Shown: positions 1-42,516 of the stretch, piece after piece | Numbering within the stretch: position 1 is the stretch's first letter | How the letters are laid out: each line of letters opens with the position of its first letter | Assembly: GCF_032444005.1 (NCBI RefSeq) | Contig: NC_091288.1 | Location: forward strand, 215,636,001 to 215,700,000 | Source: Ranitomeya imitator | Taxonomy: Eukaryota | Reading direction: 5' to 3' | Length of the DNA stretch: 64,000 bases | Notes under the pieces: model-generated | Databases searched by the model: none | What the model was told of the DNA's origin: nothing | The model's input: the letters and a program-made list of their open reading frames with translations, nothing else | Program-made: the position numbers and the translations under genes

Positions 1-3000
1 GAAGACAGGAGTCTGGAGGAGGAAGACAGGAGTCTGGAGGAGGAAGACAGGAGTCTGGAGGAGGAAGACAGGAGTCTGGAGGAGGAAGACAGGAGTCTGG
101 AGGAGGAAGACAGGAGTCTGGAGGAGGAAGACAGGAGTCTGGAGGAGGAAGACAGGAGTCTGGAGGAGGAAGACAGGAGTCTGGAGGAGGAAGACAGGAG
201 TCTGGAGGAGGAAGACAGGAGTCTGGAGGAGGAAGACAGGAGTCTGGAGGAGGAAGACAGGAGTCTGGAGGAGGAAGACAGGAGTCTGGAGGAGGAAGAC
301 AGGAGTCTGGAGGAGGAAGACAGGAGTCTGGAGGAGGAAGACAGGAGTCTGGAGGAGGAAGACAGGAGTCTGGAGGAGGAAGACAGGAGTCTGGAGGAGG
401 AAGACAGGAGTCTGGAGGAGGAAGACAGGAGTCTGGAGGAGGAAGACAGGAGTCTGGAGGAGGAAGACAGGAGTCTGGAGGAGGAAGACAGGAGTCTGGA
501 GGAGGAAGACAGGAGTCTGGAGGAGGAAGACAGGAGTCTGGAGGAGGAAGACAGGAGTCTGGAGGAGGAAGACAGGAGTCTGGAGGAGGAAGACAGGAGT
601 CTGGAGGAGGAAGACAGGAGTCTGGAGGAGGAAGACAGGAGTCTGGAGGAGGAAGACAGGAGTCTGGAGGAGGAAGACAGGAGTCTGGAGGAGGAAGACA
701 GGAGTCTGGAGGAGGAAGACAGGAGTCTGGAGGAGGAAGACAGGAGTCTGGAGGAGGAAGACAGGAGTCTGGAGGAGGAAGACAGGAGTCTGGAGGAGGA
801 AGACAGGAGTCTGGAGGAGGAAGACAGGAGTCTGGAGGAGGAAGACAGGAGTCTGGAGGAGGAAGACAGGAGTCTGGAGGAGGAAGACAGGAGTCTGGAG
901 GAGGAAGACAGGAGTCTGGAGGAGGAAGACAGGAGTCTGGAGGAGGAAGACAGGAGTCTGGAGGAGGAAGACAGGAGTCTGGAGGAGGAAGACAGGAGTC
1001 TGGAGGAGGAAGACAGGAGTCTGGAGGAGGAAGACAGGAGTCTGGAGGAGGAAGACAGGAGTCTGGAGGAGGAAGACAGGAGTCTGGAGGAGGAAGACAG
1101 GAGTCTGGAGGAGGAAGACAGGAGTCTGGAGGAGGAAGACAGGAGTCTGGAGGAGGAAGACAGGAGTCTGGAGGAGGAAGACAGGAGTCTGGAGGAGGAA
1201 GACAGGAGTCTGGAGGAGGAAGACAGGAGTCTGGAGGAGGAAGACAGGAGTCTGGAGGAGGAAGACAGGAGTCTGGAGGAGGAAGACAGGAGTCTGGAGG
1301 AGGAAGACAGGAGTCTGGAGGAGGAAGACAGGAGTCTGGAGGAGGAAGACAGGAGTCTGGAGGAGGAAGACAGGAGTCTGGAGGAGGAAGACAGGAGTCT
1401 GGAGGAGGAAGACAGGAGTCTGGAGGAGGAAGACAGGAGTCTGGAGGAGGAAGACAGGAGTCTGGAGGAGGAAGACAGGAGTCTGGAGGAGGAAGACAGG
1501 AGTCTGGAGGAGGAAGACAGGAGTCTGGAGGAGGAAGACAGGAGTCTGGAGGAGGAAGACAGGAGTCTGGAGGAGGAAGACAGGAGTCTGGAGGAGGAAG
1601 ACAGGAGTCTGGAGGAGGAAGACAGGAGTCTGGAGGAGGAAGACAGGAGTCTGGAGGAGGAAGACAGGAGTCTGGAGGAGGAAGACAGGAGTCTGGAGGA
1701 GGAAGACAGGAGTCTGGAGGAGGAAGACAGGAGTCTGGAGGAGGAAGACAGGAGTCTGGAGGAGGAAGACAGGAGTCTGGAGGAAGACAGGAGTCTGGAG
1801 GAAGACAGGAGTCTGGAGGAAGACAGGAGTCTGGAGGAAGACAGGAGTCTGGAGGAAGACAGGAGTCTGGAGGAAGACAGGAGTCTGGAGGAAGACAGGA
1901 GTCTGGAGGAAGACAGGAGTCTGGAGGAAGACAGGAGTCTGGAGGAAGACAGGAGTCTGGAGGAAGACAGGAGTCTGGAGGAAGACAGGAGTCTGGAGGA
2001 AGACAGGAGTCTGGAGGAAGACAGGAGTCTGGAGGAAGACAGGAGTCTGGAGGAAGACAGGAGTCTGGAGGAAGACAGGAGTCTGGAGGAAGACAGGAGT
2101 CTGGAGGAAGACAGGAGTCTGGAGGAAGACAGGAGTCTGGAGGAAGACAGGAGTCTGGAGGAAGACAGGAGTCTGGAGGAAGACAGGAGTCTGGAGGAAG
2201 ACAGGAGTCTGGAGGAAGACAGGAGTCTGGAGGAAGACAGGAGTCTGGAGGAAGACAGGAGTCTGGAGGAAGACAGGAGTCTGGAGGAAGACAGGAGTCT
2301 GGAGGAAGACAGGAGTCTGGAGGAAGACAGGAGTCTGGAGGAAGACAGGAGTCTGGAGGAAGACAGGAGTCTGGAGGAAGACAGGAGTCTGGAGGAAGAC
2401 AGGAGTCTGGAGGAAGACAGAGGAGTCTGGAGGAAGACAGAGGAGTCTGGAGGAAGACAGAGGAGTCTGGAGGAAGACAGAGGAGTCTGGAGGAAGACAG
2501 AGGGGTCTGGAGGAAGACAGAGGGGTCTGGAGGAGGACAGAGGGGTCTGGAGGAGGACAGAGGAGTGTGGAGGAAGACAGAGGAGTGTGGAGGAGGACAG
2601 AGGAGTGTGGAGGAGGACAGAGGAGTGTGGAGGAGGACAGAGGAGTGTGGAGGAGGACAGAGGAGTGTGGAGGAGGACAGAGGAGTGTGGAGGAGGACAG
2701 AGGAGTGTGGAGGAGGACAGAGGAGTGTGGAGGAGGACAGAGGAGTGTGGAGGAGGACAGAGGAGTGTGGAGGAGGACAGAGGAGTGTGGAGGAGGACAG
2801 AGGAGTGTGGAGGAAGACAGGAGTGTGGAGGAAGACAGGAGTGTGGAGGAAGACAGGAGTGTGGAGGAAGACAGAGGAGTCTGGAGGAGGACAGAGAAGT
2901 ATCGATGGGAGAGAGGGTTCTGGAGGGGACAGAGGAATCTGGATGGGACTGAAGGTTCTGGAGGAGGACAGAGGAGTCTGATAGGAACAGAGGAGTCTGG

Positions 3001-3120
3001 AGGAGGATAGAGGAGTCTCGATGGGACAGAGGGTTCTGAAGGAGGACTGAGGCATCTGACAGGAACAGAGGAGGACACAGGTGTCTGGAGGAGGACAGAG
3101 GAGTCTGGATGGGACTGAGG
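1..3120. repeat. Purine-rich minisatellite; unit changes from 21 bp to 18 bp to 20 bp
   Basis: GAAGACAGGAGTCTGGAGGAG repeated to ~1780, GAAGACAGGAGTCTGGAG to ~2415, then GAAGACAGAGGAGTCTGGAG and GAGGACAGAGGAGTGTGGAG variants that decay after ~2880. Confidence 0.97.
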
Positions 3121-3137
3121 AATCTGGATAGGACTGA

Positions 3138-3308
3138 GGCTGCCGTCACACTATCAGTATTTTACATCAGTATTTGTAGCCAAAACCAGGAGTGGGTGAT
3201 AAATACAGAAGTTGTGCAGATGTTTCTATTATACTTTTCCTCTAATTGTTCCACTCCTGGTTTTGGCTACAAATACTGATGTAAAATACTGCGAGTGTGA
3301 TGGCAGCC
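3138..3308. mobile_element. Palindromic MITE, PIF/Harbinger (Tourist-like) type
   Basis: Termini GGCTGCCGTCACAC / GTGTGATGGCAGCC; internal inverted repeat CAGTATTTGTAGCCAAAACCAGGAGTGG; flanked by the 3-mers TGA / TAA. Confidence 0.8.
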
Positions 3309-4007
3309 TAAGGTTCTGGAGGAGGACAGAGGCGTCTGAGGGAGGACAGAGAAGTCTGGAGAGGACAGAGGGGTCTGTTGGGGAAATGTTGCAGAATTTT
3401 ACAAATATATACTGTATGTAACACAAGAACCTGATTTAATCCCTTGGTCACCATCTGTTGACGTTCTCCTTGAACCCTCCTCCCCTTATTGCCACTTATG
3501 CTGAGTAGTTGGACAGACTGGTGATGGACACATTGCCTGACAACCCCCACACACAGCACTGTAGTTGTCGGCTTCTGTATAGCGCACTGTCCGTCCTGTC
3601 TCGGATTCTTCCCGACATGGCGGAGTGCACAGAGGACACCGCTGTTCGGTCACTTTTCGCTTTATCAGAATTTGGAGATGTGAAAATCGTGTATTAGACC
3701 TGTAACCGCCCGAGATATTGATAACCCACAAGCCAAAAAAACAGACAAAACTATGATTTTATCATTAAAGTGCGGAAAAGCGGGGCGACAACCAATAAAG
3801 TGCTAATATAACGTCCGCAGTTGTCACACAGCTTTCCCTGATTCCTGAATGACAGATCTGCGTATGATTTCATGGTGGTTGTCCATTCACGATACTGGAG
3901 CAGAGCTGCAATACCAGACACAGCCTGAGGGCAGTGGTGGTGCTGTTTACGAGGTGGTAGTTGTGCCGAGATCGCTTCCCATGGCGGTCAGGGGGATTAT
4001 TACCTAC

Positions 4008-4232
4008 CTGACAGGTGAGCATCGCCGGGAGCGTCGTCCGCGGAGCAGGAGTAATTGCTGGACGTGTTGTCAGGAGCGAGCCGTACCGTCAGGACGTTGG
4101 TATCTAACATGAGGATGATGGGAGTCATCCCCAGCAGCACCCACGAGCCGTTGCTGCGCTCCTCCATCTGCAGCTTCAGCACCAGCGGGACGGGAGCGGA
4201 GGAGTGATGTCCGCAGGGCAGAAAGGTGGAAC
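4008..4232 (-). CDS. Ig-like domain exon (exon 2) of a candidate CD19-like cell-surface receptor
   Basis: Minus-strand acceptor CCCGTCTCTGCAG| and donor |GTAGGT; 225 nt, phase 1-1, open: (G)STFLPCGHHSSAPVPLVLKLQMEERSNGSWVLLGMTPIILMLDTNVLTVRLAPDNTSSNYSCSADDAPGDAHLS. Two Cys, a Y-x-C motif and three N-glycosylation sequons; splices in frame to the exon at 6462-6549. Confidence 0.65.
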
Positions 4233-5009
4233 CTGCAGAGACGGGAGCAGATCATTTACACAATTACACAATGATCATTCCGCGCCAAGAATTGTATTTG
4301 CAGCTTCGGATGTGAGCGGAGGATATAAAATGACGGAACTCGAGATCCTACGTCCTACGTACCATCATACGACAGCGACACCCTATTCTGTGGGGGGACG
4401 TATTCGTGAACGTATTTCTTACATGTTAAATAGGGAAACCATCAGCAAGCTTGAAACTGATTTAGGTTCTTATTCCAGCTGTGACCTGTAGAAAGTCCCA
4501 GAAGAGCCCAGGTCGTGTGAAAGGGTCGAGGACAACACACTGATCTCTGGGGACCCCCAGAAATCTGGAGAATGGGGCTCGGGGTCCTGCATACTCGACC
4601 ACCGCTCCGATCATGGTGTATGGGGTTGTTGGAAGTAGCGGAGCGCTGCGCATTGTCCCATACAAAGGCTTCCAGGATCCAGGGCCGCTGGACGTCACTG
4701 TGTAACCCCCTATACTATGTATATTTGCTAACTTTTAATTTATGGCATATCCCTTTAAGATACAAGTAGCCCCGAACAGGACACGCAAGGGCCACATGAT
4801 TCTGCCCGGACTATCAGCCCATCAGATCCACATCTATTCCCGGCAGAATACACTCAAATTCCTAAAAACAGAAGCAGATCTGTCAGCACCTGCTTGCTGA
4901 TGGTTTCCACTTTTTCGAACATTACACAAAATAAAGAAAATTTATAGAAAACCAGGAGGCAGATGAAGATGTTACAAGAAGAAAAATAACCTTACCCAGA
5001 TCACCCCAA

Positions 5010-6435
5010 ATTCCCAGGATAGGGATCGTTAGGAAAGTGATGTCAGAGCGAATCCTAGATTATGGGAGAGAAGGGATCATACCAGCATACCATAGGAAGC
5101 AAGACAGAGTAGGGATCATTGTAGGGATCATTAGGAAGGTGATGTAATAGTTCTTGTTTAATTTTTATTTTGGAGAGTAGTGATCATTGCAGAATGTCAC
5201 GCTGAGCATGACAGCATAGGGATCACTACGGGGGTAACTAGGCAGGCTCTCCATTATGGAGAGTAGGGATCATCACAGATTACCGCAGAGAATATGATAA
5301 AGTAGGGATTGTTGACCAGATGATGTCAGGAATAGTCTTAGGTTATAGAGAGTAGGGATTATCAAAGAATAAAACTGTAAGCATGACAAGGTAAGAATTA
5401 TTACTGGGTTGATTAGACAGATGAGTACAGAGAGTAGGGATCATCCTATCATACCATAGAAAGCAGGACAGGATAGGGATCAATAAGGTGATGGGCGTAG
5501 GGATCATTGCAGAATGCCACACCGAGCATGATCGCATAGTGACCATTAGAGGGGTCACTAGGTAGATGATGGTAGTAATAGTTCTACATTATGGAAAGTA
5601 GGGATCATCCCAGTATCTTTAAAATAACCAGAAAGTAAAGCCCATAATAATGTATACTGTTTATTTATTTATTTTTACAATGCAAAGCGTGGAAAGAGTA
5701 GGGATCATAGGGTGGGCAGAAAAAAAGGGACCTGGACTTTGTAGGAAGAGTAGGGAACACCGTAGGCAATACATCACATAGGGTTTTACAGATTATCATA
5801 GAGTAGATAGAAAAAAGGGAGCATGATAAAGCGGGAAGAGTAGGGAACGCTGTAGGTAATGCGTAACAGCTTCATCTCCGCATATTTCTACAGATTGTTG
5901 CAGTGTAGGAAGAGTAGGGATCATCGCAGCATTGAAAGTGCACAGAATGGATCATTTCAGAATACAGAACAAAAAGAGAATAATATTGCAGGGGAATTTG
6001 AGATTGTTACAGAAATCAGGGAATTTGAGATTGTTAGGGATCGTCATCACATAGGGATCATTATGGGGACCACATCATGTAGGTCTATTAGATGGAATGA
6101 GAATCATATTTTATAGGCCAGCGATCCTATTAGTGTGGAGAGTAGGGATCATCATTTTGGAGGACGAGTAGGGAAGGATCATTGTGGGTTACCATGGGGA
6201 AAGGCAGAGTTATTACAGAGGGGTAATGATACTGTAACCAGAGTAGGGACTACCAAATAATTATTACAGTAGGGATCGTCATAGATTGTTGAATATGGAT
6301 CTATAGGATGCGGGAAAGTTATTTCTACAATATCGAGGGCTGATTACTATAAAATGGAAATAACCATAGTAGGGATCAACAAAGAATCCTGAGAGTCGAG
6401 GATTGGAGCATTGGGCTTTTCAGTAGGGATCATCA
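5010..6435 (+). repeat. Degenerate dispersed repeat of the motif (GAG)AGTAGGGATCAT in intron 1 of the receptor gene
   Basis: About 25 same-strand copies of AGTAGGGATCAT-like words at irregular spacing. Confidence 0.7.
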
Positions 6436-6461
6436 CTAGTAGATTTGGGCACATTTCTTAC

Positions 6462-6549
6462 CTTCTGCAGGCACGGTGATAATCCCGCTGTGATCTGGAT
6501 TTTCGGCTGAGCAGGGGATCCCAAGGTAGAGGACAAGGAGGAGCAGCAT
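6462..6549 (-). CDS. First coding exon (signal peptide) of a candidate CD19-like receptor
   Basis: Perfect Kozak GCCACCATG; MLLLLVLYLGIPCSAENPDHSGIITVPAE has a hydrophobic core and a small-residue cleavage region; 88 nt, phase-1 donor AAG|GTAAG; divergent from RABEP2, as CD19 is in mammals. Confidence 0.7.
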
Positions 6550-7584
6550 GGTGGCCCCAGAACTGACAGCGAGTAACTGAGGGCACCGCTCAGCGAGCCA
6601 GAAACACAAAGTCACAGGAGCAGAACATTCTCAACAACTGGGTCCCCTGGGAGGAGCGGCTGCACCTGCAGGGTGGGCTGCAACAAGAACTAAGGGCGTC
6701 CTCAAAAGTCTGAAGATCTCTCATGTGTCAGATTCTCAGCAGAAAACGAAACGAGAAGTTCTGGGAAGTTTAGTCAAATCTAAAGAACAAGACGCATAAG
6801 GGGAACATCACAGGGTAATAATAATCATGAGCTGCAGATCTCACACCGATCACTGAGCGCTAAAGTATCATCTTATAGGTTCCTTAGGCTCAGGCTCGGA
6901 CTGGCCCACTGGAGAACCGGAGGATTCTCCAGTGGGCCCAGGCACTGACACCTGCTGGCATATTGGCCAGCAGCTGCCTAGGGCCTCCACTGCTCCAGGG
7001 GCCCCCCAGCCAGTGGAGTGTCGCTAATAGCGACACACCCAGCTGCTATGGGGCCCCTGAGTCAAGGGGGGCCCTTCTGGTGCCGGAGAGCAGCAGATGG
7101 ACAGGAGCCTGTCCCCGCTGCTAAAGAGAAATTAATATTCACGCTTCCCCATGCCCCCATGGGCGTGGAGAGGCGTGAATACCATTTCACTTTAATGGCA
7201 GGCAGCGTTAGCCGCAGGCTGAGGCTAACACTGCCCGCCGCTGCTGAATGGGGGGCCCCAGAGGTGGGCACCTAAAGTGCGGCGATCCTTGATTGCGATC
7301 CCTGCAGCTTGGGACCAGAGCGGAGCTACAGGGATCCACGCCGTCCTCCTTCCTGCCCGGCACTTCCTGTCTGAATCAGCGCGGCTGGATGACGTCATCA
7401 TTTCAGACAGAAAGTTGCCGGGATGTGCTGCGGCTGCTGGGAACGTGCGGAGAGGTGAGTGGGTGCTGTGTGTGTGTATGCGCAAGTGTGCCTGAATGTG
7501 TGCGGCTGTGTGTGTCTGTGTGTGTGCGTCTCTGCCTCCATGTGTGCAGCTGTGTGTGTGGGGGGGTGAGGCAACGATGGCGGC

Positions 7585-8300
7585 GCTGGAGGAATGATGA
7601 TGGCGCTGGAGGCAATGATGATGGCGCTGGAGGCAATGATGATGGCGCTGGAGGCAATGATGATGGCGCTGGAGGCAATGATGATGGCGCTGGAGGCATT
7701 GATGATGGCGCTGGAGGCATTGATGATGGTGCTGGAGGCAATGATGGTGGTGGGGGCAATGATGATGGTGCTGGATGCAATGATGATGGCGCTGGAGGCA
7801 ATGATGATGGCGCTGGAGGCAATGATGATGGTGCTGGAGGCATTGATGATGGTGGTGGGGGCAATGAGGATGGTGCTGGAGGCAACGATGATGGTGCTGG
7901 AGGCAATGATGATGGTGCTGGGGGCAATGATGATGGTGCTGGGGGCAATGATGATGGTTCTGGAGGCAAGGATGATGGTGGTGTGGGCAAGGATGATGGT
8001 GGTGGGGGCAATGATGATGATGGTGGTGGGGGCAATGATGATGGTGGTGGTGGTGGCGATGATGATGATGGTGCTGGAGGCAATGATGATGGTGGTGGGG
8101 GCAATGATGATGTTGCTCGAGGCAATGATGATGATGACGATGGGGCAATGATGATGGTGGGGAAGAAAGCAATGATGGCTGTGCTGTAAAGGACAAAGAT
8201 GGTAGTGGTGGAAAGGACAATGGTGGTGGGGAAGGAGGCAATGATGGAGGTGGTAATGAGTACAATGGTGGAGGGGGAGAAAAATGATGATGGTGGAGGG
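7585..8300. repeat. 21-bp GATGATGGCGCTGGAGGCAAT minisatellite decaying into (GAT/GGT)n
   Basis: Direct tandem periodicity; explains the low-complexity His/Pro/Met ORFs. Confidence 0.92.
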
Positions 8301-8800
8301 GGCTGCATTATACCTTTTCAGGGGGGCTGCATTATACCCTATGAGGGGGCTACATTATAATTCTGTGGGGGCTGCATCATACTATATGAGGGGAGCTGCA
8401 TTATGCCCTATGAGGGGCTACAGTATATTCTATGGTGGCCTGCCTTACGAGGGGTTGGCATTATACTCTGAGGGGGCTGCATTATATTCTGTGGAGGGGC
8501 AGCATTATTCTCTCAGGTGGCTACATCATACTATTTGAGGGGAGCTGCATTATGCCCTATGAGGGGGCTACATTATATTCTGTGGAGGGGCTGCATTATA
8601 CCTTATGAGGGGGTTGCATTATATTTTGTGGGGTGCTGTATTATACCCTATGAGGGGGGCTGCATTATATTCCATGAGGGAGGCTACATTATATTCTATG
8701 AGGAATCTGCATTATATTCTATGGGGGGCTGCATTATATTCTGTGGGAGGCTACATTATATTCTATGAGGGGGGCTACTTTACATTCTATGAGGGGGCTA
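8300..8800. repeat. Degenerate ~23-27-bp GAGGGGGCTGCATTATATTCTAT minisatellite
   Basis: Recurring GGGGGCTGCATTAT / GGGGGCTACATTAT units. Confidence 0.85.
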
Positions 8801-9054
8801 CCCCAACCCCTGCTACATAATTAAGACATGTACTACCTTATATTATGCCCTGATATTAGTGTGTTTTACCGCACAATTGATGGTCTTGAATGTATTTCTA
8901 TGTAGCTACATAGTGGGCCCCAAGAATGATTTTCTCTGGTGGGCCCAAGGTGCTCCAATCCGACGCTGGCTGAGGTTACAATAAAATATAACATATATAT
9001 ATATTTATAGTACAGGATCCTCCAATCACAACAGGCGAAGTCCCAGCTACCTCC

Positions 9055-9700
9055 GCCCTCTCTGCACAGCTCACCTCCTCCCACTATCTGTATAATGATC
9101 TCTGCACAACTCTTCTCCTCCCACTCTCTGTATAATGATCCCTGCACAGCTCACCTCCTCCAAACTCTCTGTATAATTATCTCTGCACAGCTCTCCTCCT
9201 TCCACTCTCTGTATAATGATCTATGCACAGCTCTCCTCCTCCCTCTCTGTATAATGATCTCTGCACAGCTCTCCTCCTCCCTCTCTGTATAATGATCTCT
9301 GCACAGCTCTCCTCCTCCCACTCTCTGTATAATGATCTCTGCACAGCTCTTCTCCCATTCTCTGTATAATGATCTCTGCACAGCTCTCCTCCTCCCATTC
9401 TCTGTATAATGATCTCTGCACAGCTCTCCTCCTCCCTCTCTGTATAATGATCTCTGCACAGCTCACCTCCTCCCACTCTCTGTATAATGATCTCTGCACA
9501 GCTTACCTCCTCCCATTTTCTGTATAATGATCTCTGCACAGCTCTCCTCCTCACTCTCTGTATAATGATCTCTGCACAGCTCTCCTCCTCCCACTCTCTG
9601 TATAATGATCTCTGCACAGCTCTCCTCCTCCCACTCTCTGTATATTGATCTCTGCACAGCTCTCCTCCTCCCACTCTCTGTATAATAATCTGTGCACAGC
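9055..9700. repeat. ~37-40-bp minisatellite TATAATGATCTCTGCACAGCTCTCCTCCTCCCACTCTCTG
   Basis: About 16 tandem units; one inverted copy at ~10567-10610. Confidence 0.92.
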
Positions 9701-10105
9701 TCACCCCCTAGTGGTGGCTGCAGACAGGATCTTATCATGTATCTCTGTATACAGGGAGCTCCCCCTAGTGGTGGCTGCAGACAGGATCTTATCATGTATC
9801 TCTGTAGACAAGAAGATCCCTCTAGTGGTGGCTGCAGATAGGATCTTATCATGTATCTCTGTATACAGAGAGCTCCCCCTAATGGTGGATGCAGACAGGA
9901 TCTTATAATGTATCTATGTATACAGGGAGCTCCCCCTAGTGGTGGCTGCAGACAGGATCTTATGTATCTCTGTATACAGGGAGCTCCCCCTAGTGGTGGC
10001 TGCAGACAGGATCTTATCATGTATCTCTGTATACAGGGAGCTCCCCCTAGTGGTGGCTGCAGACAGGATCTTATCATGTATCTCTGTATACAGGGAGCTC
10101 CCCCT
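9700..10105 (-). repeat. 56-58-bp satellite containing CCACTAGGGGGAG, reverse orientation
   Basis: About 7 units of GAGCTCCCCCTAGTGGTGGCTGCAGACAGGATCTTATCATGTATCTCTGTATACAG. Confidence 0.92.
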
Positions 10106-10233
10106 ATTTAGTCAGTCGCCAATTGTGCAAGTTCTCCCACTTAAAAACATGAGAGAGGCCTGCAATTGACATCAAAGGTAGACGACAACTATGAGAGTCA
10201 AAAGGAGAAAACAAATCCAGAAAACCAGTATTA
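10105..10233 (+). mobile_element. Short fragment of the Tc1 left end
   Basis: Identical to ~12773-12890 (TTTAGTCAGTCGCCAATTGTGCAAGTTCTCCCAC...AAATCCAGAAAA). Confidence 0.85.
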
Positions 10234-10609
10234 CATGAGGGCGTCGATACTTCCTAATGTGACCTTAAAGAAAAACATAACAGAAAAGCATAAAACAAAC
10301 AAGTAAAAAACATTTGATAAAATAAATTGACAAAAAATAACAAAAATCAGAATAAAGGCGTGAACTGTGAAAAAAGTCATCAAACAAATTACCAAAAATA
10401 GTAGTAAAGTCATCGAAACCGACAATGTGAGGAGGAAATAATGCAAAAATGTACAAACATCAGAGTAATAATAATGTCCCAGCAAACAAGTCTCGGAGCA
10501 GGTGGCCTCAATGGTCTGGAAATGTTCATGGACTTCAGTAGGATAGTGTTGTGAGCATGCTCTTTGAGCTGTGCAGAGATCATTATACAAAGAGTGGGAG
10601 GAGGAGCTC

Positions 10610-11430
10610 CCTGTATACAGATATCTGATAAGATCCTGTCTGCAGCCACCACTAGGGGGAGCTCCCTGTATACAGATATCTGATAAGATCCTGTCTGCAG
10701 TCACCACTAGGGGGAGCTCCCTGTATACAGATATCTGATAAGATCCTGTCTGCAGCCACCACTAGGAGGAGCTCCCTGTATACAGAGATACATGATAAGA
10801 TCCTGTCTGCAGCCACCACTAGGGGGAGCTCCCTGTATACAGAGATACATGATAAGATCCTGTCTGCAGCCACTACTAGGGGGAGCTCCCTGTATACAGA
10901 GATACATGATATGATCCTGTCTGCAGCCACCACTAGGGGGGCTCCCTGTATACAGATATCTGATAAGATCCTGTCTGCAGCCACCACTAGGGGGAGCTCC
11001 CTGTATACAGAGATACATGATAAGACCCTGACTGCAGCCACCACTAGGGGGAGCTCCCTGTATACAAATATCTGATAAGATCCTGTCTGCAGCCACCACT
11101 AGGAGGAGCTCCCTGTATACAGAGATACATGATAAGATCCTGACTGCAGCCACCACTAGGGGGAGCTCCCTGTATACAGAGATACATGATAAGATCCTGT
11201 CTGCGGCCACTACTAGGGGAGCTCCCTGTATACAGAGATACATGATAAGATCCTGTCTGGAGCCACCACTAGGGGGAGCTCCCTGTACACAGAGATACAT
11301 GATAAGATCCTGTCTGTAGCCACCACTAGGGGGCGCTCCCTGTATACAGATACATTATAAGATCCTGACTGCAGCCACCACTAGAGGGAGCTCCCTGTAT
11401 ACAGAGATACATAAGATCCTGTCTGAAGAC
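10610..11430 (+). repeat. 56-58-bp satellite containing CCACTAGGGGGAG, forward orientation
   Basis: About 14 units of CTGCAGCCACCACTAGGGGGAGCTCCCTGTATACAGAGATACATGATAAGATCCTGT. Confidence 0.92.
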
Positions 11431-11864
11431 ACAAAAGAGAATGGTAAAACCAAAAACACTCAGTTTGAAAAAATGTTTGCAGTAATCCGCAAGTGCTAGT
11501 AAAAGATGTAAATAACAGGGTATTTGGTTGATACGTTTTTTGCAAAAAATGTATACTAAGCTGCTCTACCAATCTTCACGGTATACCCATATCAGAGCAG
11601 TCCTAACTAATGTATGCAATCCCTATCTGATGTATTTAAAAACCTGATCATCTGTATATTACCTGTGTGAACAGGGTTCAGAGAGGAAAAATCCATGTGT
11701 GCATACAGGGTAGAACAGCTTTTGTGCAGCTAGCCCAAGAGGAGTGGTGGAACTCCCCAGTCTTGTAGACACAAGAGAACAATCATGGAAACAGGAACAC
11801 ATGGGCTACTTGCACAGTGAACAAGTCTGTAAGAACATGTTCACACACCACCAAGAAACCTGAA

Positions 11865-12520
11865 GGGGGGAGCTCCCTGTATACAGAGATACATGATATG
11901 ATTCTGTCTGCAGCCACCACTAGGGGGAGCTCCCTGTATACAGATATACATGATATGATTCTGTCTGCAGCCACCACTAGGGGGAGCTCCCTGTATACAG
12001 AGATACATGATAAGATCCTGTCTGCAGCCACCACTAGGGGGAGCTCCCTGTATACAGATATACATGATATGATTCTGTCTGCAGCCACCACTAGGGGGAG
12101 CTCCCTGTATACAGAGATACATGATAAGATCCTATCTGCAGCCACCACTAGGGGGAGCTCCCTGTATACAGATATACATGATATGATTCTGTCTGCAGCC
12201 ACCACTAGGGGGAGCTCCCTATATACAGAGATACATGATAAGATCCTGTCTGCAGCCACCACTAGGGGGAGCTCCCTGTATACAGATATACATGATATGA
12301 TTCTGTCTGCAGCCACCACTAGGGGGAGCTCCCTGTATACAGAGATACATGATAAGATCCTATCTGCAGCCACCACTAGGGGGAGCTCCCTGTATACAGA
12401 TATACATGATATGATTCTGTCTGCAGCCACCACTAGGGGGAGCTCCCTGTATACAGAGATACATGATATGATTCTGTCTGCAGCCACCACTAGGGGGAGC
12501 TCCCTGTATACAGATACATA
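11865..12520 (+). repeat. 56/58-bp satellite, forward orientation, alternating dimer structure
   Basis: About 11 units that alternate 56-bp and 58-bp variants. Confidence 0.92.
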
Positions 12521-13006
12521 AGATTCAGTATTAACACTGTGTGTGCCAGTTTGGAGCTGGTTGCTGTAGCAGAGGGCAGTGGGGTGTAGAGGGTGTTCCT
12601 CTCGCCCGCCGATCACACACGGCTGCATCCTGTTTGTCGCTCTCACATAGGGAGGATGTGTATTTTTCTACCGTCTTACTTCTTACTCAGTTATTGTAGC
12701 AAATGCTATAAAACCCAACCGAACCACGCACGAAGCCAGAACACAACATACATACAGTGGGGAAAAAAAGTATTTAGTCAGTCGCCAATTGTGCAAGTTC
12801 TCCCACTTAAAAACATGAGAGAGGCCTGCAATTGACATCAAAGGTAGACGACAACTATGAGAGTCAAAAGGAGAAAACAAATCCAGAAAATCACCTTGTC
12901 TTATTTGGTAAGATTTATTTTGCATATTATGGTGGAAAATAAGTATTTGGTCACCTAAAAACATGCAAGGTTTCTGGCTCTCCCAGACCTGTAACTTCTT
13001 CTTTAA

Positions 13007-13199
13007 GGCCACATTCACACTAGCAGTATTTGGTCAGTATTTTTCATCAGTATTTGTAGCCAAAACCAGGAGAGGAACAAATAGAGGAAAAGTATAATAG
13101 AAACATCTGCACCACTTCTGTATTTATCACCCACTCCTGGTTTTGGCTACAAATACTGATGAGAAATACTGACCAAATACTGATAGTGTGACGGCAGCC
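13007..13199. mobile_element. PIF/Harbinger-type MITE, first of a stack of three
   Basis: TAA|GGCCACATTCACACT...AGTGTGACGGCAGCC|TTA; same core as 3138-3308. Confidence 0.8.
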
Positions 13200-13202
13200 T
13201 TA

Positions 13203-13612
13203 GGCTACTTTCACACTGGCGTTTTTTTTAATACGTCGCAATGCGTCGTTTAGGGGAAAAAACGCATCCTGGAAAGTTGTTTGCAGGATGCGTTTTTGCC
13301 CCATAGAGTAACATTACCGACGCATTGCGACACGTCGCAACCGTCGTGCGACAGTTGCGCCGTGTTGTGGTGGACCGCCGGGAGCAAAAAACGTTAAATG
13401 TAACGTTTTTTGCTCCAGACGGACCGCTTTTTCCGACCGCGCATGCGCGGCCGGAACTCCGCTCCCACCTCCTTGCACCTCACAATGCGGCAGCGGATGC
13501 GCCGGAGAATGCATCCGCTGCACTCGTTGTGCGGCGCTAACAACGCTAGCGTCGGAATCTCGGCCCGACGCAATGTGACGGGCCGAATTCCGACGCTAGT
13601 GTGAAAGTAGCC
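13203..13612. mobile_element. PIF/Harbinger-type MITE, second of the stack
   Basis: TTA|GGCTACTTTCACACT...AGTGTGAAAGTAGCC|TTA. Confidence 0.85.
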
Positions 13613-13615
13613 TTA

Positions 13616-14010
13616 GGCTACTTTCACATTTCCGTCGGTAGTCGGCCATCACAAAGCGTCGGCGCGACGTACCGACGGACGTTTATGAAATAGTGTATAT
13701 CGTGAGCAGCGGACGCAGTTTTTCAACGGGTCCGCTGTCCAGTGTAAAGTCCCGGGGAGGAAAGAGAGAGAGAGATTTCCTGCCGGGCATGCGAAGTCGG
13801 AAACACAGGATACAACATACGGAAAAACGTTCCCTTGAACGTTTTTTTTGCAAAAGACGGGCCGTCACATTTTGCAGGATTCAGTGCACGACGGACAAAA
13901 CGTGACTCCATACGTCGCTAATACAAGTCTATGGGAAGATGCAGGATCCTGCATTTTCAAAAATCGACGTATTGCGACGGTAGCAGAAAGACGGAAATGT
14001 GAAAGTAGGC
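13616..14010. mobile_element. PIF/Harbinger-type MITE, third of the stack
   Basis: TTA|GGCTACTTTCACATTTCCGTC...GACGGAAATGTGAAAGTAGGC. Confidence 0.8.
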
Positions 14011-14265
14011 TATGAGGCTCCTCTGTCCTCCGCTCATTACCTGTAGTAATGGCTGTTTGACCTTGTTAACAGTATAAAAGACACCTGTCCACAACCTCAG
14101 TCACACTACAAACCCCACTATGGTGAAGACCAAAGAGCTGTAGAAGGACACCAGAAACAAAATTGTAGCCCTGCACCAGGCTGGGAAGACTGAATCTGCA
14201 ATAGCCAACCAGCTTGGAGTGAAGAAATCAACTGTGAGAGCAATAATAAGAAAACGGAAGACTAA

Positions 14266-14614
14266 GGCCGTGTGCACACGATGCGGAATTTGTGCGGATC
14301 AACAGCGGATTTTTCCGCGCAGAAATGCTGCAGATCTGCACAGTGATTTACAGTACAATGTAAACCAATTGGGAAAAAAAAAGCTGTGCTAATGGTGCAG
14401 AAAAATCCGCATGAAAACCGCTGCGGAACAAAAGAAGTAGCATGCTACTTCTTTATTGTGGAACTGAAACGTTTCTGACCCCTTCTATAATAGAAATCCG
14501 CAGGGGTAAAAACCGCAGAAAATCCACGGCAAATCCACACCTGCGGTTTCTGTCGGGAGATGCGGATTTTGTGCGGAAAATTCTGCACCCCAATCCGTAA
14601 CGTGTGCACATAGC
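14266..14614. mobile_element. MITE interrupting the Tc1 transposase N-terminus
   Basis: TAA|GGCCGTGTGCACACG...CGTGTGCACATAGC; breaks the reading frame after AIIRKRK. Confidence 0.75.
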
Positions 14615-15338
14615 AATAGAAGACCACTGAATCTCCCTCTATCTGGGGCTCCATGCAAGATGTCACCCTGTGGGGTCAAAATGATCACAAGAACAGAGAG
14701 CAAAAATCCCAGAACCACACGGGGGACCTAGTGAATGACCTAAATAGAGCTGGGACCAATGTAACAAAGGCTACCATCAGTAACACACTACGCCAGGGAC
14801 TCAGATCCTGCAGTGCCAGACGTGTCCCCCTGCTTAAGCCAGTACACATGTGAGGTGTGCTAGAGAGCATTTGGATGATCCAGAGGAGTTTTGGGAGAAT
14901 GTCCTATGGTCTGATGAAACCAAAGTAGAACTGTTTGGTAGAAACAAAACTCATCGTGTTTGCAGGAGACAGAATGCTGAGCTGCATCCAAAGAACACCA
15001 TACCTATTGTGAAGCATGGGGGTGGCAACATCATGCTTTGGGGCTGCTTATCCGCAAAGGGACCAGGACGACTGATCCGTGTACATGAAAGAATGAATGG
15101 GGCCATGTATCGTGAGATTTTGATTGCAAACCTCCTTCTATCAGCAAGAGCATTGAAGATGAAACATGATGATGCCAAGCACACCGCCAGGGCAACGAAG
15201 GAGTGGCTTCGTAAGAAGCATATGAAGGTCCTGGAGTGGCCTAGCCAGTCTCCAGATCTCAACCCTATAGAAAACCTTTGGAGGGAGTTGAAAGTCCGTG
15301 TTGCCCAGTGACGAGCCCAAAACATCACTGCTCTAGAG

Positions 15339-15500
15339 CAGGGGTCCCCAACTCCAGTCCTCAAGGCCCACCAACATGTCATGTTTTCAGGATTTCCTTA
15401 GTCTTGCCCAGGTAATAATTGCATCACCTGTGCAATGCAAAGGAAATCCTGAAAACATGACCTGTTGGTGGGCCTTGAGGACTGGAGTTGGGGACCCCTG
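15339..15500. mobile_element. hAT-type MITE (162 bp)
   Basis: Perfect 8-bp TSD CTCTAGAG on both sides; TIR CAGGGGTCCCCAACTCCAGTCCTCAAGG; near-perfect palindrome. Confidence 0.92.
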
Positions 15501-15669
15501 CTCTAGAGGAGATCTGCATGGAGGAATGGGCCAAAATACCAACAACAGTGTGTGCCAACCTTGTGAAGACTTACAGAAAACGTTTGACCTAACGTAGAGA
15601 GATAAACTGCCCTGATTTAAGCTGCTGCTTATCTCCATAAATTAAATTATCAGCCTTAATATATGTATA

Positions 15670-17630
15670 GTCCCTGCAGCCCACCCTGCAGTCTCCCGGG
15701 TCCCCCTGCAGCCCACCCTGCAGTTTCCCGGGTCCCCCTGCAGCCCACCCTGCAGTCTCCCGGGTCCCCCTGCAGCCCACCCAGCACTCTCCCCTGAGTC
15801 CCCCTGCAGCCCACCCTGCACTCTCCCGAGTCCCCCTGCAGCCCACCCTGCACTCTCCCGAGTCCCCCTGCAGCCCACCCTGCACTCTCCCGAGTCCCCC
15901 TGCAGCCCACCCTGCACTCCCCCGAGTCCCCCTGCAGCCCACCCTGCACTCTCCCGAGTTCCCCTGCAGCCCACCCTGCACTCCCCGAGTCCCCCTGCAG
16001 CCCACCCTGCACTCCCCGAGTCCCCCTGCAGCCCACCCTGCACTCCCCCGAGTCTCCCTGCAGCCCACCCTGCAGTCTCCCCAGTCCCCCTGCAGCCCAC
16101 CCTGCACCCCACCCTGCACTCCCCGAGTCCCCCTGCAGCCCACCCTGCACTCCCCCGAGTCCCCCTGCAGCTCACCCTGCACTCCCCGAGTCCCCCTGCA
16201 GCCCACCCTGCACTCCCCCGAGTCCCCCTGCACTCCCCCGAGTCCCCCTGCAGCCCCCCCTGCACTCCCCCGAGTCCCCCTGCAGCCCACCCTGCACTCC
16301 CCGAGTCCCCCTGCAGCCCACCCTGCACTCCCCCGAGTCCCCCTGCACTCCCCCGAGTCCCCCTGCAGCCCCCCCTGCACTCCCCCGAGTTCCCCTGCAG
16401 CCCACCCTGCACTCCCCGAGTCCCCCTGCAGCCCACCCTGCACTCCCCCGAGTCCCCCTGCAGCCCACCCTGCACTCCCCCGAGTCCTCCTGCACTCCCC
16501 CGAGTCCCCCTGCAGCCCCCCCTGCACTCCCCCGAGTCCCCCTGCAGCCCACCCTGCACTCCCCGAGTCCCCCTGCAGCCCACCCTGCACTCCCCCGAGT
16601 CCCCCTGCACTCCCCCGAGTCCCCCTGCAGCCCCCCCTGCACTCCCCCGAGTTCCCCTGCAGCCCACCCTGCACTCCCCGAGTCCCCCTGCAGCCCCCCC
16701 TGCACTCCCCCGAGTCCCCCCGCAGCCCACCCTGCACTCTCCCGAGTCCCCCCGCAGCCCCCCCTGCACTCCCCCGAGTCCCCCTGCAGCCCCCCCTGCA
16801 CTCCCCCCGAGTTCCCCTGCAGCCCACCCTGCACTCCCCGAGTCCCCCTGCACTCCCCCGAGTCCCCCTGCAGCCCCCCCTGCACTCCCCCGAGTCCCCC
16901 TGCAGCCCACCCTGCACTCCCCGAGTCCCCCTGCAGCCCCCCTGCACTCCCCCGAGTCCCCCTGCACTCCCCCGAGTCCCCCTGCAGCCCACCCTGCACT
17001 CCCCGAGTCCCCCTGCAGCCCCCCCTGCACTCCCCCGAGTCCCCCTGCAGCCCCCCCTGCACTCCCCCGAGTCCCCCTGCAGCCCACCCTGCACTCCCCC
17101 GAGTCCCCCTGCAGCCCCCCCTGCACTCCTCCGAGTCCCCCTGCAGCCCCCCCTGCACTCTCCCGAGTCCCCCTGCAGCCCACCCTGCACTCCCCCGAGT
17201 CCCCCTGCAGCCCCCCCTGCACTCCCCCGAGTCCCCCTGCAGCCCACCCTGCACTCCCCCGAGTCCCCCTGCAGCCCCCCCTGCACTCCCCCCGAGTCCC
17301 CCTGCAGCCCCCCCTGCACTCCCCCCGAGTCCCCCCTGCACTCCCCCCGAGTCCCCCTGCAGCCCCCCCTGCACTCCCCCCGAGTCCCCCTGCAGCCCCC
17401 CCTGCACTCCCCCCGAGTCCCACCTGCACTCCCCCGACTTCCCCTGCAGCCCACCCTGCACTCTCCCGAGTCCCCCTGCAGCCCCCCCTTCACTCCCCCC
17501 GAGTCCCCCTGCAGCCCACCCTGCACTCCCCCGAGTCCCCCTGCAGCTCCCCCTGCAGCTCCCCCTGCACTCCCCCGAGTCCCCCTGCAGCCCCCCCTCC
17601 ACTCTACCCTGTAGCCCACCCTGCAGCCCC
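15670..17630. repeat. C-rich ~31-33-bp minisatellite CCCCCTGCAGCCCACCCTGCACTCCCCCGAGT
   Basis: Tandem periodicity with sub-unit slippage; source of the spurious Gly-rich minus-strand ORFs. Confidence 0.95.
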
Positions 17631-18400
17631 CGATGCTGCACAATCATCACCAGCAGCATTTCCACCTGCAGCTCATGCAGGACCGGTCTCCTCTGCCGGA
17701 AATTGCCGAACTCACTGATCTGAGACGACGGAAAGTCCCGAGCTGCCTCCAAGACAATAAGACGAGCGGAGCCGAGCGCTGCCGGAAATCACCGAGGTCC
17801 CTGCTGTCCTCAGAGCCGAGCGCTGCCGGAAATCACCGAGGTCCCTGCGTCCTCAGAGCCGAGCGCTGGCGGAGATTCCCGAGCGGATACGGAAACGTGT
17901 CCCATGCGGATGCGGATTTGCTTGGGAGGAAAGTTGGAGGTTTGGGAAGGAAAGTAGAAGTGTGTGCGCCCCCCGAAGGCTGCAGCCAAGGTGGGTGCAG
18001 GGTCTGCCTGTGTGATGTGCAGCAGAGCTGCCGGTACAATGTGTTATGTGAATGCAGCTGCATGCTGGGAGTTGTAGTCCCTCTTCTCTATGCAGGAAAG
18101 TCTGTGTGCATTAGTTCACATAATATATAAAAGTAATATCCAGGCCAGAGCGGCGACCCCAGGAGCTGACGATCTAATGACGCCAGCAGTGCAGGGGTTA
18201 ATGCAATTAATGCTGCACGGGGGAGGGGCTTGTGGATTAATTTTGCCTAATTAATTATTCCGATCACAGGGAGTGAAGACGCTGGAAGGACAAGATGGCG
18301 GCAAAATGTTACCGCAGATTTATTTGTGACTTTGCTGATAAAATCCGCGGTTGCGGCGCCGTATTAATATCGGCTCTCGATTCTTCATTTATTTTTGTTT
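17630..18400. promoter_or_regulatory. CpG-rich promoter-like region with ZNF143/Staf and YY1 motifs
   Basis: High CpG density; reverse-strand GGACTACAACTCCCAGCATG at 18061-18080 (SBS/M4 consensus); CAAGATGGCGGC at 18291-18302 (YY1 consensus). Confidence 0.55.
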
Positions 18401-18754
18401 CTTGTCTGTGAACCGTTTTCTTAATGTCTCCTGGGGCTCAGGAAAGTGTTTTTAGGATTTTTTGGGGGTAAGAAGACGCTTGTGCTAAAGTTCTGCAACT
18501 TCTGAGACAACAAGTGTAAAATGATGAATCGGAAAAGTCAGAATAAAATGGCGAAGAAGCAGGAAAATAGGAGAAGTGAAATGCTGATGGTCGGGTGTGA
18601 TCACTGGAGCCGGGATCTGGGCGTTCAGTCATGATGCCGTCAGCGCTGCAGCCAGTCATGGGCAGCAGCGGTCACCTGTGAATGGCGGCCATTACCCTTG
18701 ATAGTTGGTCTCCATGCCCATTAATATGTACATTTCTTCCATCTCGTCCCCCAG

Positions 18755-21700
18755 GAAACCTCCGCGTGTTGATGTCTCGGTCAGAAGATGGCAGCTTTGT
18801 CCAGGACCCCCTCACGTCCTCTCCTGGGGGCCCCTGTGATGACCCCGAGCTCCTGGCCACCACTGAGGCCTTTGCCAGAGGCTTTGATTGCGTCTCCATT
18901 TCCTCTTTTTCGGGGGAGCGACTGATCCAGGGCCAGGAGGACACGGCCTCCATTATCTCTACGGCCACCCTGGTCCCCGAGTGCATATACATCCCCCCGG
19001 CGGGCTTCCAGCTACTGTCCGAGCAGGAGGTAACCATCCCCCCTGGCCGCGCTTCCGCCAGCCCCTTGGTCCATTGTGTCTTTCTGGTTAGAAAAAAAGC
19101 CGCATCTAAAGTAAAAATACCGATCTTTCCAAAAATCCTATAGCGATGTTTCCATAGTAACAGACTACACACAAGGCCTGCGTAGTCAGATAGCGCCGCC
19201 ACATTCCCTAACACGTGTGCACTCCTCCTTCACTAGTTTTTTTGGAAAGACGTATGATTTTTTTTTTTGGTTTGTTTTTTTCGGTTACTAAGGCAACACA
19301 GATCTGTATACAGCTTCTATACAGACCTACGTGTTTCCCTGGCAACAGACTACGAGCAAACCCTGCGTAGTCAGATCCTACACAAGAAGGAAGGAATGTG
19401 ACGTATCAGACTACACAGGTCTTGTTCATAGCCTGTTACCAAGGAAACTCATAGATCTGTATAGAAGTTGTCTAATGACCTGTGTTGCCTTAGTAACAGA
19501 CTACAAACGAGGCCTATGTAGTCTGATCCGACACACTTCTTCCTTTGTTTTTTTTAGAAAGGAATATGACCACAGGGTCCGACTACACAAGGTTTGCTCG
19601 TAGTCTGTTACCATGGAAACGTATAGGAGCTCGATAGTTTAGGATATTTACACAGTTGCTTCACTTTTCAGACGCGTTAAGGCAATAAAAACAATAATAC
19701 AAGAAACGCGTGAAGTGGTAGTGATGGCGGGGGGCATCAGTAGTAACATTTCTGTGTTTTGGGCCAGTGGGCGCAGCAGAAGGCGGCACTGCAGAGCGCC
19801 ACGGAGCGGCTGGAGGTGGTGACCCAGGAGAAGGAGGCGCTGCAGGACGCCCTGAGGTGCAGCTCGGAGGACTGCGCTAACCAGGCGAGTCATTGTATAG
19901 ACGTATGGCGCAGGTCTATGTGTGACCACCGTATGGACTCATCGCCCGCTGCCTCTCCTGCAGGTGAAGCAGTTACTGGAGCAGATAAAAAGCTCCGAGG
20001 AAATCCTGCAAGGTCTGCAGAGAACCATGGCTGACACCCAGCAGAAGACGTCCCAAAAAATGGTGAGTTATCACCATCCCTTCTTCATTCTGACCGTCCT
20101 AGCCTCCTCCTCACTGACGTGAAGCTTTACGCCAGCTGCCTGGCATTGAGCCGACCTTCCGGATCGGTGCATTTCTAGGTTTCGCTGTCAGATAATCAGG
20201 ATTTATTCTAATAATGGAGCAACGGAACAACCGGGATCCCCTCCTCACATTCGGGCTTTCTTCTTTGTTTTCTTCCCAGGCCGCCCTGACGGCCTCCTTC
20301 AGCCGCATGTGTCAGGAGGTGAACGGTCTCGATGACGAGAGCGAGAAGCTGAGGACACTAAGTTTACAAGCGCCCCCTGCTGGTCAGAACGCGCAGCTCT
20401 CAACCCCGCAGGTATACAGAGACTTTATTACAGTGTGCACAGCGTCAGTCAGCAGCTGCTAAAGCCTGCGAGATATGTGTCTCTCTATGGTGTGACTGGT
20501 GCCCTAACTTCTGCTGATGACTGGGCACGCTACTCAGACAGAAAGTTACTTGGTATTTTAGGCTTTTTTTGTCATATTTTATACCATTTTTTTCCCCAGA
20601 GAGCGGCGCAGCACAGACAGGAGCGGTTGTGTATCGAGATCGTCTCTCTGCAAGAGGAGCTGAAAGGCGAACAAGTGGCGAAGCAAGAGGTGGAGGAGCA
20701 GCTGAGGAGAACGACGGACACCCACACCGAGGAGAGGGGTGAATGAGCTCAGTCTGGGGGGCGGGCGCCCGTCTATCCCTGCAGGCAGTCCCCTGCGCAG
20801 CACATGGACTGCTGGATGTCGCCATGATGCCCAGATCCGCTCCGCCGGTCACTGATGGGCGTCCTTCTTCCCCGTAAATGCCAACAAACCCGATCTCGTT
20901 AGGACCGTCCCACAGCCATGTGCGTTTAGGGGTCTTTCTATGATATTTTGGGAACAATCCTGGGGTTTGGTTTTAAGTGACCCAAATTTTGCCCCAGTTA
21001 TAGTAGAAAATGGCAAAATTAAAAAAAATAATAAAATTTCCTCCTTTTCCCGCCCCAGAAGCCCTTTATGGCCTCATGGAGGTAAAAATTCAACCAGATT
21101 GTATTTAAAAATACATTAAATAAAATCAGATAATTAAATAAAATATTGTGCTCCGTCGCTGGAGCCCCATCCACCTGGAAATTAAATTAAAAAAATACTA
21201 CATTAATATATATATTAAAAAAAAAAATAATAATAATAAAAAAAAAAAATCCTGGGGTTCTGCATACTGTGACATGTGGTGTATTTCCAGGGCATTACTG
21301 ACTTTTTCCTCCTCTTCCTCGTGATGTCAGAGATTATGGAAGGTAGGTGCCGTGTTTTGGGTGGGGGGCTCGGCTCAGCTCTCGCCCCTCACCACTGGTC
21401 TCTGATCTTGCAGCCACGCTCTCCAGCCTGAGGACGGAGATGGAGCGGATACAGCAGGACCGGAAACAGGTGGGATAAGAGAGACCCCTTCATTCTCTGC
21501 CTTCTCAGTCCCTGATTTTCCCTGTAGTCGGACATGAGTCTGGGGACCGCCAAGTAGTGTTGGGTTAATGGAAAATGTTTATATCCTTTAAGGGGGTTGT
21601 CAACATTTGAGGACACTTTTTGTTGAGTATTTTTTTTTTTTTTTACTTAAATACATGTATTTTGATCTACGAAAAATTCTGTCACCGTTTCTTTTCTATG

Positions 21701-41680: not shown

Positions 41681-42206
41681 TTAAGAGGCAAAGTACAATG
41701 AATCTGTACCTGTTCCTCTAACATATCTTTATATATTTTCATCCCATTCTTGTAAACAGCAGGAAGAATCTTGTAATTACACACAGTCTCAGGAACTTTG
41801 CCATTTTTTTATTACCTTTCATGCAAATTCTACCTGCATATTATCTGTGCTTCAGCAGTACCTGAGGGCTGTTGAGTTCTCTCGGAAGGCAGCTAGGTCC
41901 ACGTTGTATGCAGCTACATTATTTCTATATTAAAATGGATTATTTTTGTTGGGTTCGGTGGATTTTATTCCTCATGTTTCTTTGAAGTTTAGTGCACCAG
42001 CTGTTGTGGGACTACAACTCACAGCATATCCTTACAGTCTATCCAATCAAATCTTGGAGACTGAACTTTATTTGTTAAAGTGCATGGGCTCAGAATATTA
42101 TAACATGTAATTTCCATTAAATGTGACTTTGGTATTATGCCTAATAAGTGTAATAAATATTTTGTCGGTTTTTATGTCTTTTCTTGTTGCTTTTTTGCTT
42201 AGAGAG

Positions 42207-42516
42207 ATGGTGGACTCGATAAGCAATGACTCATCACTGCAAAGGCTCCATGATTACAGCCCGGAATCTAAGTATGAACAGGTCAGCCTGCAATTATTTG
42301 GGATGCAGGGGTACGGAAAATCCTCTTTTATTAACACGTGCATGAATATTGTCCACGGAGGAACTTTTACCAATGTGGCTGGATCTGGGAAGTCTGACAA
42401 ACCTATCACTATGGAGAGAATGGACTATAACCTGTCATCTAAAGTGCTCATCACCGATAACTGAGGGCTTGGCAAAATGAGCCCGGAAGAGCGGGAAGAG
42501 ATGGCCGCCCAGATGG
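42207..42516 (+). pseudogene. Exon 1 of a third, divergent IFI44-like GTPase; premature stop and no downstream exons
   Basis: MVDSISND...VSLQLFGMQGYGKSSFINTC...MERMDYNLSSKVLITDN-TGA-GLGKMSPEEREEMAAQM; TGA (42462-42464) replaces the Arg of DNRG; phase-1 donor ATGG|GTATGT as in the paralogs; cut off by the junction at 43093. Confidence 0.8.

Follow-up and report, generated by a model that had tools for sequence, protein, structure and literature searches.

The ectodomain of human CD19 has an unusual fold, in which two immunoglobulin (Ig) folds are accompanied by a connecting part (PMC8155657, referring to Teplyakov 2018). Conserved tyrosines of the CD19 tail, once phosphorylated, dock PI3K, Vav, PLC and Lyn (PMC10055206), and the YxxM motifs are those that bind the p85 subunit of PI3K (PMC3414724). 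In the human genome RABEP2 and CD19 are adjacent (PMC12898128). A BLAST-based survey found CD19 in amphibians and not in fish, and its origin is placed at the amphibians; CD21 was not found in Xenopus (PMC9141580). Here we consider a stretch of 64,000 nucleotides (nt) of the genome of the frog Ranitomeya imitator, which we call the window and which contains no N letters. Its minus strand between positions 6549 and 4008 almost certainly carries the first two coding exons of this species' CD19 gene. A gene with exactly these exons is already present in RefSeq under the name CD19, as is the case for about 20 other amphibians, and it is not new.

Coding exon 1 (6549-6462, minus strand) is 88 nt long, ends in phase 1, and supplies the start codon, the signal peptide and the first mature residues. 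Its ATG at 6549 stands in the context GCCACCATGC. An initial annotation of this DNA, made from the letters alone, had proposed an 88-nt, phase-1 signal-peptide exon with a perfect Kozak sequence; the exon and the Kozak core are as described, but position +4 is C and not G. The exon encodes MLLLLVLYLGIPCSAENPDHSGIITVPAE plus one base of the split Gly codon of residue 30, and it ends ...GAAG/GTAAG at 6462 (here and below a slash marks a border). After intron 1 (6461-4233, minus strand; 2229 nt, GT..AG), the acceptor sequence ...CTCTGCAG directly precedes position 4232, where coding exon 2 begins (4232-4008, minus strand; 225 nt, phase 1-1). The donor on its far side reads ...TCAG/GTAGGT at 4008, and both exons are flanked by GT..AG borders. 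Exon 2 encodes 74 residues, forming the N-terminal Ig-like half of the ectodomain. In the numbering of the protein they include Cys36 and Cys92, the motif Y90-S-C92, and sequons at N57 (NGS), N85 (NTS) and N89 (NYS), so that the two cysteines, the Y-x-C motif and the three sequons named in the initial annotation are all found where it had put them. Its caveat that the canonical C-strand Trp of the Ig fold is missing also holds: that position is Leu50.

Exons 1 and 2 were searched as separate peptides, and full-length work was carried out on public proteins. The exon 1 peptide is 100% identical to residues 1-29, and the exon 2 peptide 100% identical to residues 31-104, of XP_069590941.1. This is isoform X3 of the R. 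imitator protein that RefSeq names "B-lymphocyte antigen CD19", the others being isoform X1 (XP_069590938.1, 444 amino acids) and isoform X2 (XP_069590940.1). The same N-terminus is common to all three isoforms and to CAJ0934183.1, the CD19 protein of a second R. imitator assembly. An exhaustive search with the exon 2 peptide returned two proteins in 1.84 billion, both with tails full of Y-E-N, YEDM and YENM; one of them is the CD19 of Anomaloglossus (residues 32-104 of 452, 68% identity, E 1.8e-21). A word search with the Anomaloglossus protein gave 22 amphibian proteins, nearly all called "B-lymphocyte antigen CD19" by NCBI and one of them from R. imitator. Neither this search nor a word search with an amphibian profile brought up a second CD19-like gene of R. 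imitator. The proposal that this is a frog CD19 is thus borne out, and the synteny reasoning behind it holds; the accompanying claim that the gene had gone undetected is mistaken, since RefSeq isoforms X1 to X3 already include both exons.

Public sequencing runs show that the two exons are joined. A search of such runs found eight, each with about one tenth of the words of 3950-6650, which is roughly the fraction of the interval taken up by the two exons. Contigs of four runs (runs X1, X3, X5 and X7, not to be confused with the isoforms; two studies and two Ranitomeya species) were aligned to 3450-6750. In every one of the four, a single contig consists of 5' untranslated region and exon 1, an exact skip of 2229 nt, and exon 2, with 6462 joined to 4232; this is the in-frame splice that the initial annotation had predicted and had proposed as a check. 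The skipped stretch, 4233-6461, is bounded by CT..AC on the plus strand, which is GT..AG on the minus strand, and the intron-less contig is a spliced product. Contigs of all four runs continue past exon 2 into letters absent from the window, and these loose ends, when reverse-complemented, read TGAGCTGGATGATGTGGAGGAGCAGCGGAT, the start of exon 3. The 5' untranslated region extends at least over 6644-6550 (minus strand), as given by a contig of run X3 that spans 6460-6644 and is joined to exon 2; in organism B a contig extends as far as 6711 and has an insertion of 26 nt after 6675. Assembled contigs of this kind speak to presence only, with level, tissue and start site outside their reach.

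The contigs also carry known alleles. Variant sites lie at window positions 4083, 4040, 4157 and 6516, and in runs X5 and X7 they match alleles already on record: the R80W variant of the X5 contig is the allele of CAJ0934183.1, and the P12T, R55P and A94V variants of the X7 contig (organism B) agree exactly with the CD19 protein of R. variabilis.

One residue at the joint between exons 2 and 3 differs between transcripts and gene models. RefSeq and one contig of run X3 read ...TCA G/AT AGT GAG, giving Asp105, while the contigs of runs X1, X5 and X7 (three of the four) read ...TCA GGT AGT GAG, giving Gly105. In the genome the donor is tcag/gtag/gtaata (window 4000-4012) and the acceptor is cacag/atag/TGAG (18655-18670 of the CD19 locus record described below). 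Gly105 may therefore arise from use of a donor at 4004 together with an acceptor 4 nt further in, both borders being shifted by 4 nt and the frame kept; alternatively, it may reflect an A/G polymorphism at the first base of exon 3. Asp105 is also found in the models of the second R. imitator assembly, which has the X5 allele, and of R. variabilis, which has the X7 residues. Because Asp thus appears in models that match the very alleles of those two runs, the evidence leans towards the splice shift, without settling the matter. Most transcripts may then use the shifted donor and acceptor and encode Gly105 where RefSeq has Asp.

The remainder of the gene lies outside the window. The locus of isoform X1 (GCA_032444005.1, CM064365.1, 215611719-215652549) was taken as a record of its own, bases 1-16549 of which are the exact reverse complement of window positions 1-16549, which places the window in this assembly. 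Spliced mapping of isoform X1 to this record yields 13 coding exons, all with GT-AG borders, and the first two are 6549-6462 and 4232-4008. The other 11 exons (exons 3 to 13) precede window position 1 by 2112 to 14,281 letters, with exon 3 starting at base 18662 of the record, the nearer of these limits. They encode the second Ig-like half, a transmembrane helix (YWIVMAVASSSALLGLLLAGGFV in isoform X1), and a tail of some 220 residues that is acidic and rich in tyrosine. The protein has the architecture of a type I membrane protein, with a signal peptide, two Ig-like ectodomain halves and one transmembrane helix. The initial annotation had correctly noted that no transmembrane or cytoplasmic exon lies inside the window, and the second Ig exon, transmembrane exon and YxxM-bearing tail that it expected upstream of position 1 are all there, with two YxxM motifs.

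Both introns that fall within the window are repetitive. Between 5109 and 6431, the minus strand of intron 1 contains 12 perfect copies of GATCCCTAC, and none is on the other strand; by chance 0.7 would be expected in the entire window. The copies resemble the remains of a degenerate repeat whose period was roughly 100-150 nt. Intron 2 is 6119 nt long, and the part inside the window (4007-1, minus strand) is mostly a 21-nt minisatellite. This occupies 1-3018, with about 150 copies of the unit GAAGACAGGAGTCTGGAGGAG (plus strand) at 97% matches, and also has 18-nt and 36-nt variants. It is responsible for the strong GC and AT skew in the first 4 kb of the window. The window DNA further downstream of exon 2 is non-coding, with no exons in 1-3018.

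The layout of the gene can be compared directly with that of human CD19 (7JIC chain A, 7URV chain C). In both, the leader is encoded by the first exon and an Ig-like exon of phase 1 comes next; both encode two Ig-like halves, a single transmembrane segment and a long acidic tail with YxxM sites, and both have a neighbouring rabaptin gene in divergent orientation. Human CD19 has 15 exons, as compared with the 13 coding exons in R. imitator. There are further differences: the first half of the R. imitator protein has Leu50 at the Ig Trp position, neither of its halves is found by Pfam Ig models, and the semi-structured middle part of the human ectodomain, S118-S185, is absent from it; it has 444 amino acids where human CD19 has 556 (PMC8155657).

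On the other side of the shared upstream region, rabaptin-like open reading frame pieces in ascending order mark the exons of a rabaptin-family gene, taken as RABEP2, at 18682-22229 on the plus strand. Pfam Rab5-bind matches 21819-22226 (E 3.9e-11), and the exons match the human RABEP1 chain 1tu3_F (E 3.7e-07). CD19 and this gene diverge from the region between them, as in human, so that transcription away from a rabaptin gene, described initially as RABEP2, stands as far as family and orientation are concerned; RABEP2 and RABEP1 are not separated by these matches. NFATC2IP, which had been suggested as the gene to follow CD19, does not do so. The next called gene past CD19 (locus record 31783-39602, plus strand; about 15.2-23.1 kb before window position 1) has Pfam matches to DUF1619_N and TCTN_DUF1619, of the tectonic family, and within the DNA seen the synteny with human 16p11.2 is therefore confined to the rabaptin side.

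The name CD19 in RefSeq comes from an automatic pipeline, and for this reason we sought independent support for it. A profile built from an alignment of 18 amphibian sequences matches human CD19 (7jic_A) in one co-linear stretch, profile positions 18-248 to chain positions 16-320 (43.4 bits, E 1.1e-10); of the four matches listed, none has a better single stretch. This match runs through the first Ig-like part, to which exon 2 aligns, passes over some 60 residues that have no counterpart on the frog side, and continues through the second Ig-like part and the transmembrane segment. We also used an AlphaFold model of the ectodomain (residues 1-198, 21-row alignment), in which both halves are all-beta (predicted local distance difference test score, pLDDT, 79; predicted template modelling score, pTM, 0.74). 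In an exhaustive structural comparison the human CD19 chains 7urv_C and 7jic_A rank first and second of 48,161 chains, with alignments of 114-122 residues that span both halves (root-mean-square deviation 3.8-3.9) and a weak Z of 5.4; we count this result as consistent with CD19 and as no more than that. The invariant columns of the amphibian alignment lie mostly in the tail, where S-x-S-Y-E-D-M-x-G surrounds Y350 and D-x-D-S-Y-E-N-M surrounds Y381, together with further Y-E-N/D sites; SYEDM at Y350 and DSYENM at Y381 are invariant in the 18 sequences.

How firmly these observations tie the frog gene to mammalian CD19 must be judged against several that weigh on the other side. With the profile, several generic Ig-superfamily proteins equal or exceed CD19 in whole-sequence score, although such proteins (LRIG1, titin, contactin) gain their similar scores through several shorter pieces. 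A Z of 5.4 is middling on the tool's own scale, with rank 3 at Z 5.0, and a Foldseek comparison of the ectodomain model with the PDB gave no match at E <= 0.001. Sequence searches leave the link to mammals indirect: phmmer with isoform X1 against the PDB gave no match at E <= 10, and no Pfam family was found for the exon peptides (E <= 10) or for isoform X1 (E <= 1). The word searches returned amphibian proteins and no amniote CD19; the one with the profile was limited to 8000 candidates, and this result is no evidence of absence. The human tail lies outside the alignments, and the neighbouring gene is identified as a member of the rabaptin family and not as RABEP2 in distinction from RABEP1. 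Finally, the sequencing runs, which are only presumed to be RNA, come with no tissue label and thus do not speak for B cells in particular. Exon 2 by itself gave, in a phmmer search against the PDB, only chance matches to chlorophyll-binding proteins (E ~1); there was also a word search with the exon 2 peptide, which found no candidate among proteins of 41-130 amino acids and so carries little weight. The expectation that simple protein similarity might miss this fast-evolving gene was a fair one, with no Pfam family and no phmmer match in the PDB; of the profile and structure checks proposed with it, Pfam failed, the amphibian profile reached human CD19, and the fold match was weak.

These points bear on two other readings of the locus. 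One is that the gene named CD19 in RefSeq encodes some other Ig-superfamily transmembrane adaptor, named by the pipeline and not a true orthologue of mammalian CD19. The missing Pfam and pairwise PDB matches, the generic Ig proteins that rival CD19 in profile score, the structural Z of only 5.4 and the tectonic-like downstream neighbour in place of NFATC2IP would all fit such a gene. Against it stand the single co-linear profile match through both Ig-like halves and the transmembrane segment of human CD19, the top two positions of human CD19 in the fold search, where its aligned spans are also the longest, and the divergent orientation to a rabaptin gene as in human. The tail is a further point against it, since neither the two YxxM motifs nor the repeated acidic Y-E-N sites vary between caecilians and frogs. 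An independent, BLAST-based report of amphibian CD19 (PMC9141580) points the same way, and we consider this reading very improbable. Membership of another Ig-superfamily gene was accordingly rejected on the co-linear profile match, the fold ranks, the rabaptin synteny and the tail motifs. The basis of the link to amniotes is then the ectodomain profile, the weak fold match, the one-sided synteny and the motifs of the tail.

The other reading, in which the open frame of the two exons arose by chance, or the pair is a spurious or alternative start that the real transcript does not include, has nothing to recommend it beyond the lack of family matches for the exon peptides. It is opposed by contigs from four runs, representing two species, that lack precisely the intron, by the 100% identity to all three RefSeq isoforms, and by the conservation of the exon 2 peptide across frogs. 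The spliced contigs and the RefSeq identity already refute it, and we give it practically no credence.

Comparison among amphibians shows how divergent the gene is. R. imitator CD19 is only 25-35% identical to that of Xenopus and caecilians. Exon 2 itself matches none of the Ig-superfamily models (Pfam ig, I-set, V-set, Ig_2, Ig_3), with both Cys present and the Trp not. The Trp column, 14 residues beyond the first Cys, is occupied by Trp in Ascaphus, Discoglossus, Xenopus and caecilians and by Leu in neobatrachian frogs; a second Trp (W60) is common to frogs. Pfam Ig matches (E <= 1) are clear in the CD19 of Ascaphus, Xenopus and caecilians, the homologous exon included, and survive only in non-neobatrachian sequences. 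Since the homologous exon of these animals matches Ig models, exon 2 is a decayed Ig domain, one by descent and not by its own score.

The CD19 proteins of Xenopus tropicalis (XP_002941751.3) and of the caecilians Microcaecilia and Geotrypetes resemble that of R. imitator in the leader, the pattern of the first Ig-like exon, the transmembrane segment and the invariant tail motifs. They differ in keeping the canonical Trp and clear Pfam Ig matches, and in having a third Ig-like segment between the two halves. This segment is missing from Ascaphus, Bombina, Discoglossus and all listed neobatrachian sequences, and in R. imitator a tblastn search of intron 2 for remains of it found none. We raise the tentative possibility, which we think rather less than an even prospect, that neobatrachian frogs have a minimised CD19 ectodomain, reduced in three ways and perhaps still of the CD19 fold. 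The proposed reductions are the decay of the Ig signatures of both halves past Pfam detection (Leu50 in exon 2; an exon 3 without YxC in Ranitomeya), the lack of the mammalian middle part, and the lack of the additional Ig-like segment that Xenopus and caecilians have.

Several other features of the window lie beyond the CD19 exons. Between the CD19 and rabaptin exons, about 2 kb (15589-17752) are taken up by a tandem repeat with 73% GC, which yields long spurious open reading frames on the minus strand, of up to 684 amino acids. Upstream of CD19 a public gene call for a 693-amino-acid product starts at about 7600. This start falls inside a 21-nt tandem repeat (7568-8159) that translates as MMMALEA repeats, and the first exon of the call is therefore doubtful. 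Three related open reading frames on the plus strand (28638-29012, 42123-42461 and 45990-46361) share a P-loop-like G-x-G-K-S-S motif and have weak MMR_HSR1 matches, below the cut-off (E 0.002-0.003); they resemble exons from a family of GTPase genes within a block that has been duplicated. Mobile elements are represented by an intact Tc1/mariner-type transposase reading frame of 344 amino acids (29361-30395, minus strand; HTH_Tnp_Tc3_2, DDE_3), a DDE_3 fragment (14850-15311, plus strand), and the pol region of a long terminal repeat (LTR) retrotransposon in three reading frame pieces (47494-49791, plus strand; RVT_1, RNase H, integrase, chromodomain).

The function of the protein can be sketched by analogy with mammalian CD19, whose expression is restricted to B cells and which associates with CD81 and CD21. 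Exon 1 supplies the signal peptide and exon 2 the N-terminal Ig-like half of a short ectodomain; this half probably packs against the one encoded from exon 3 to make a single ectodomain of the CD19 type, with the tetraspanin CD81 as its partner. If the mammalian scheme applies, frog CD19 would stand on B cells beside the antigen receptor, and triggering of the receptor would lead to phosphorylation of the tail tyrosines. Y350 (in YEDM) and Y381 (in YENM) would thereby become docking sites for the PI3K subunit p85, with Vav and Src-family kinases recruited to other sites of the tail, the combined effect being to lower the threshold for B-cell activation.

As a discovery the finding has small value, the gene being already annotated in this assembly and amphibian CD19 being in the literature. 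It does show that raw sequence and synteny sufficed to call the 5' end of a gene that is unseen by Pfam and by pairwise searches. The reduced neobatrachian ectodomain, with its eroded Ig signature above an invariant tail, may be relevant to the interface between CD19 and CD81 and to the engineering of stable ectodomains. If the minimised ectodomain proposed above is real, these frogs would offer a natural "core" CD19, from which one could read the parts of the ectodomain that the co-receptor really needs.

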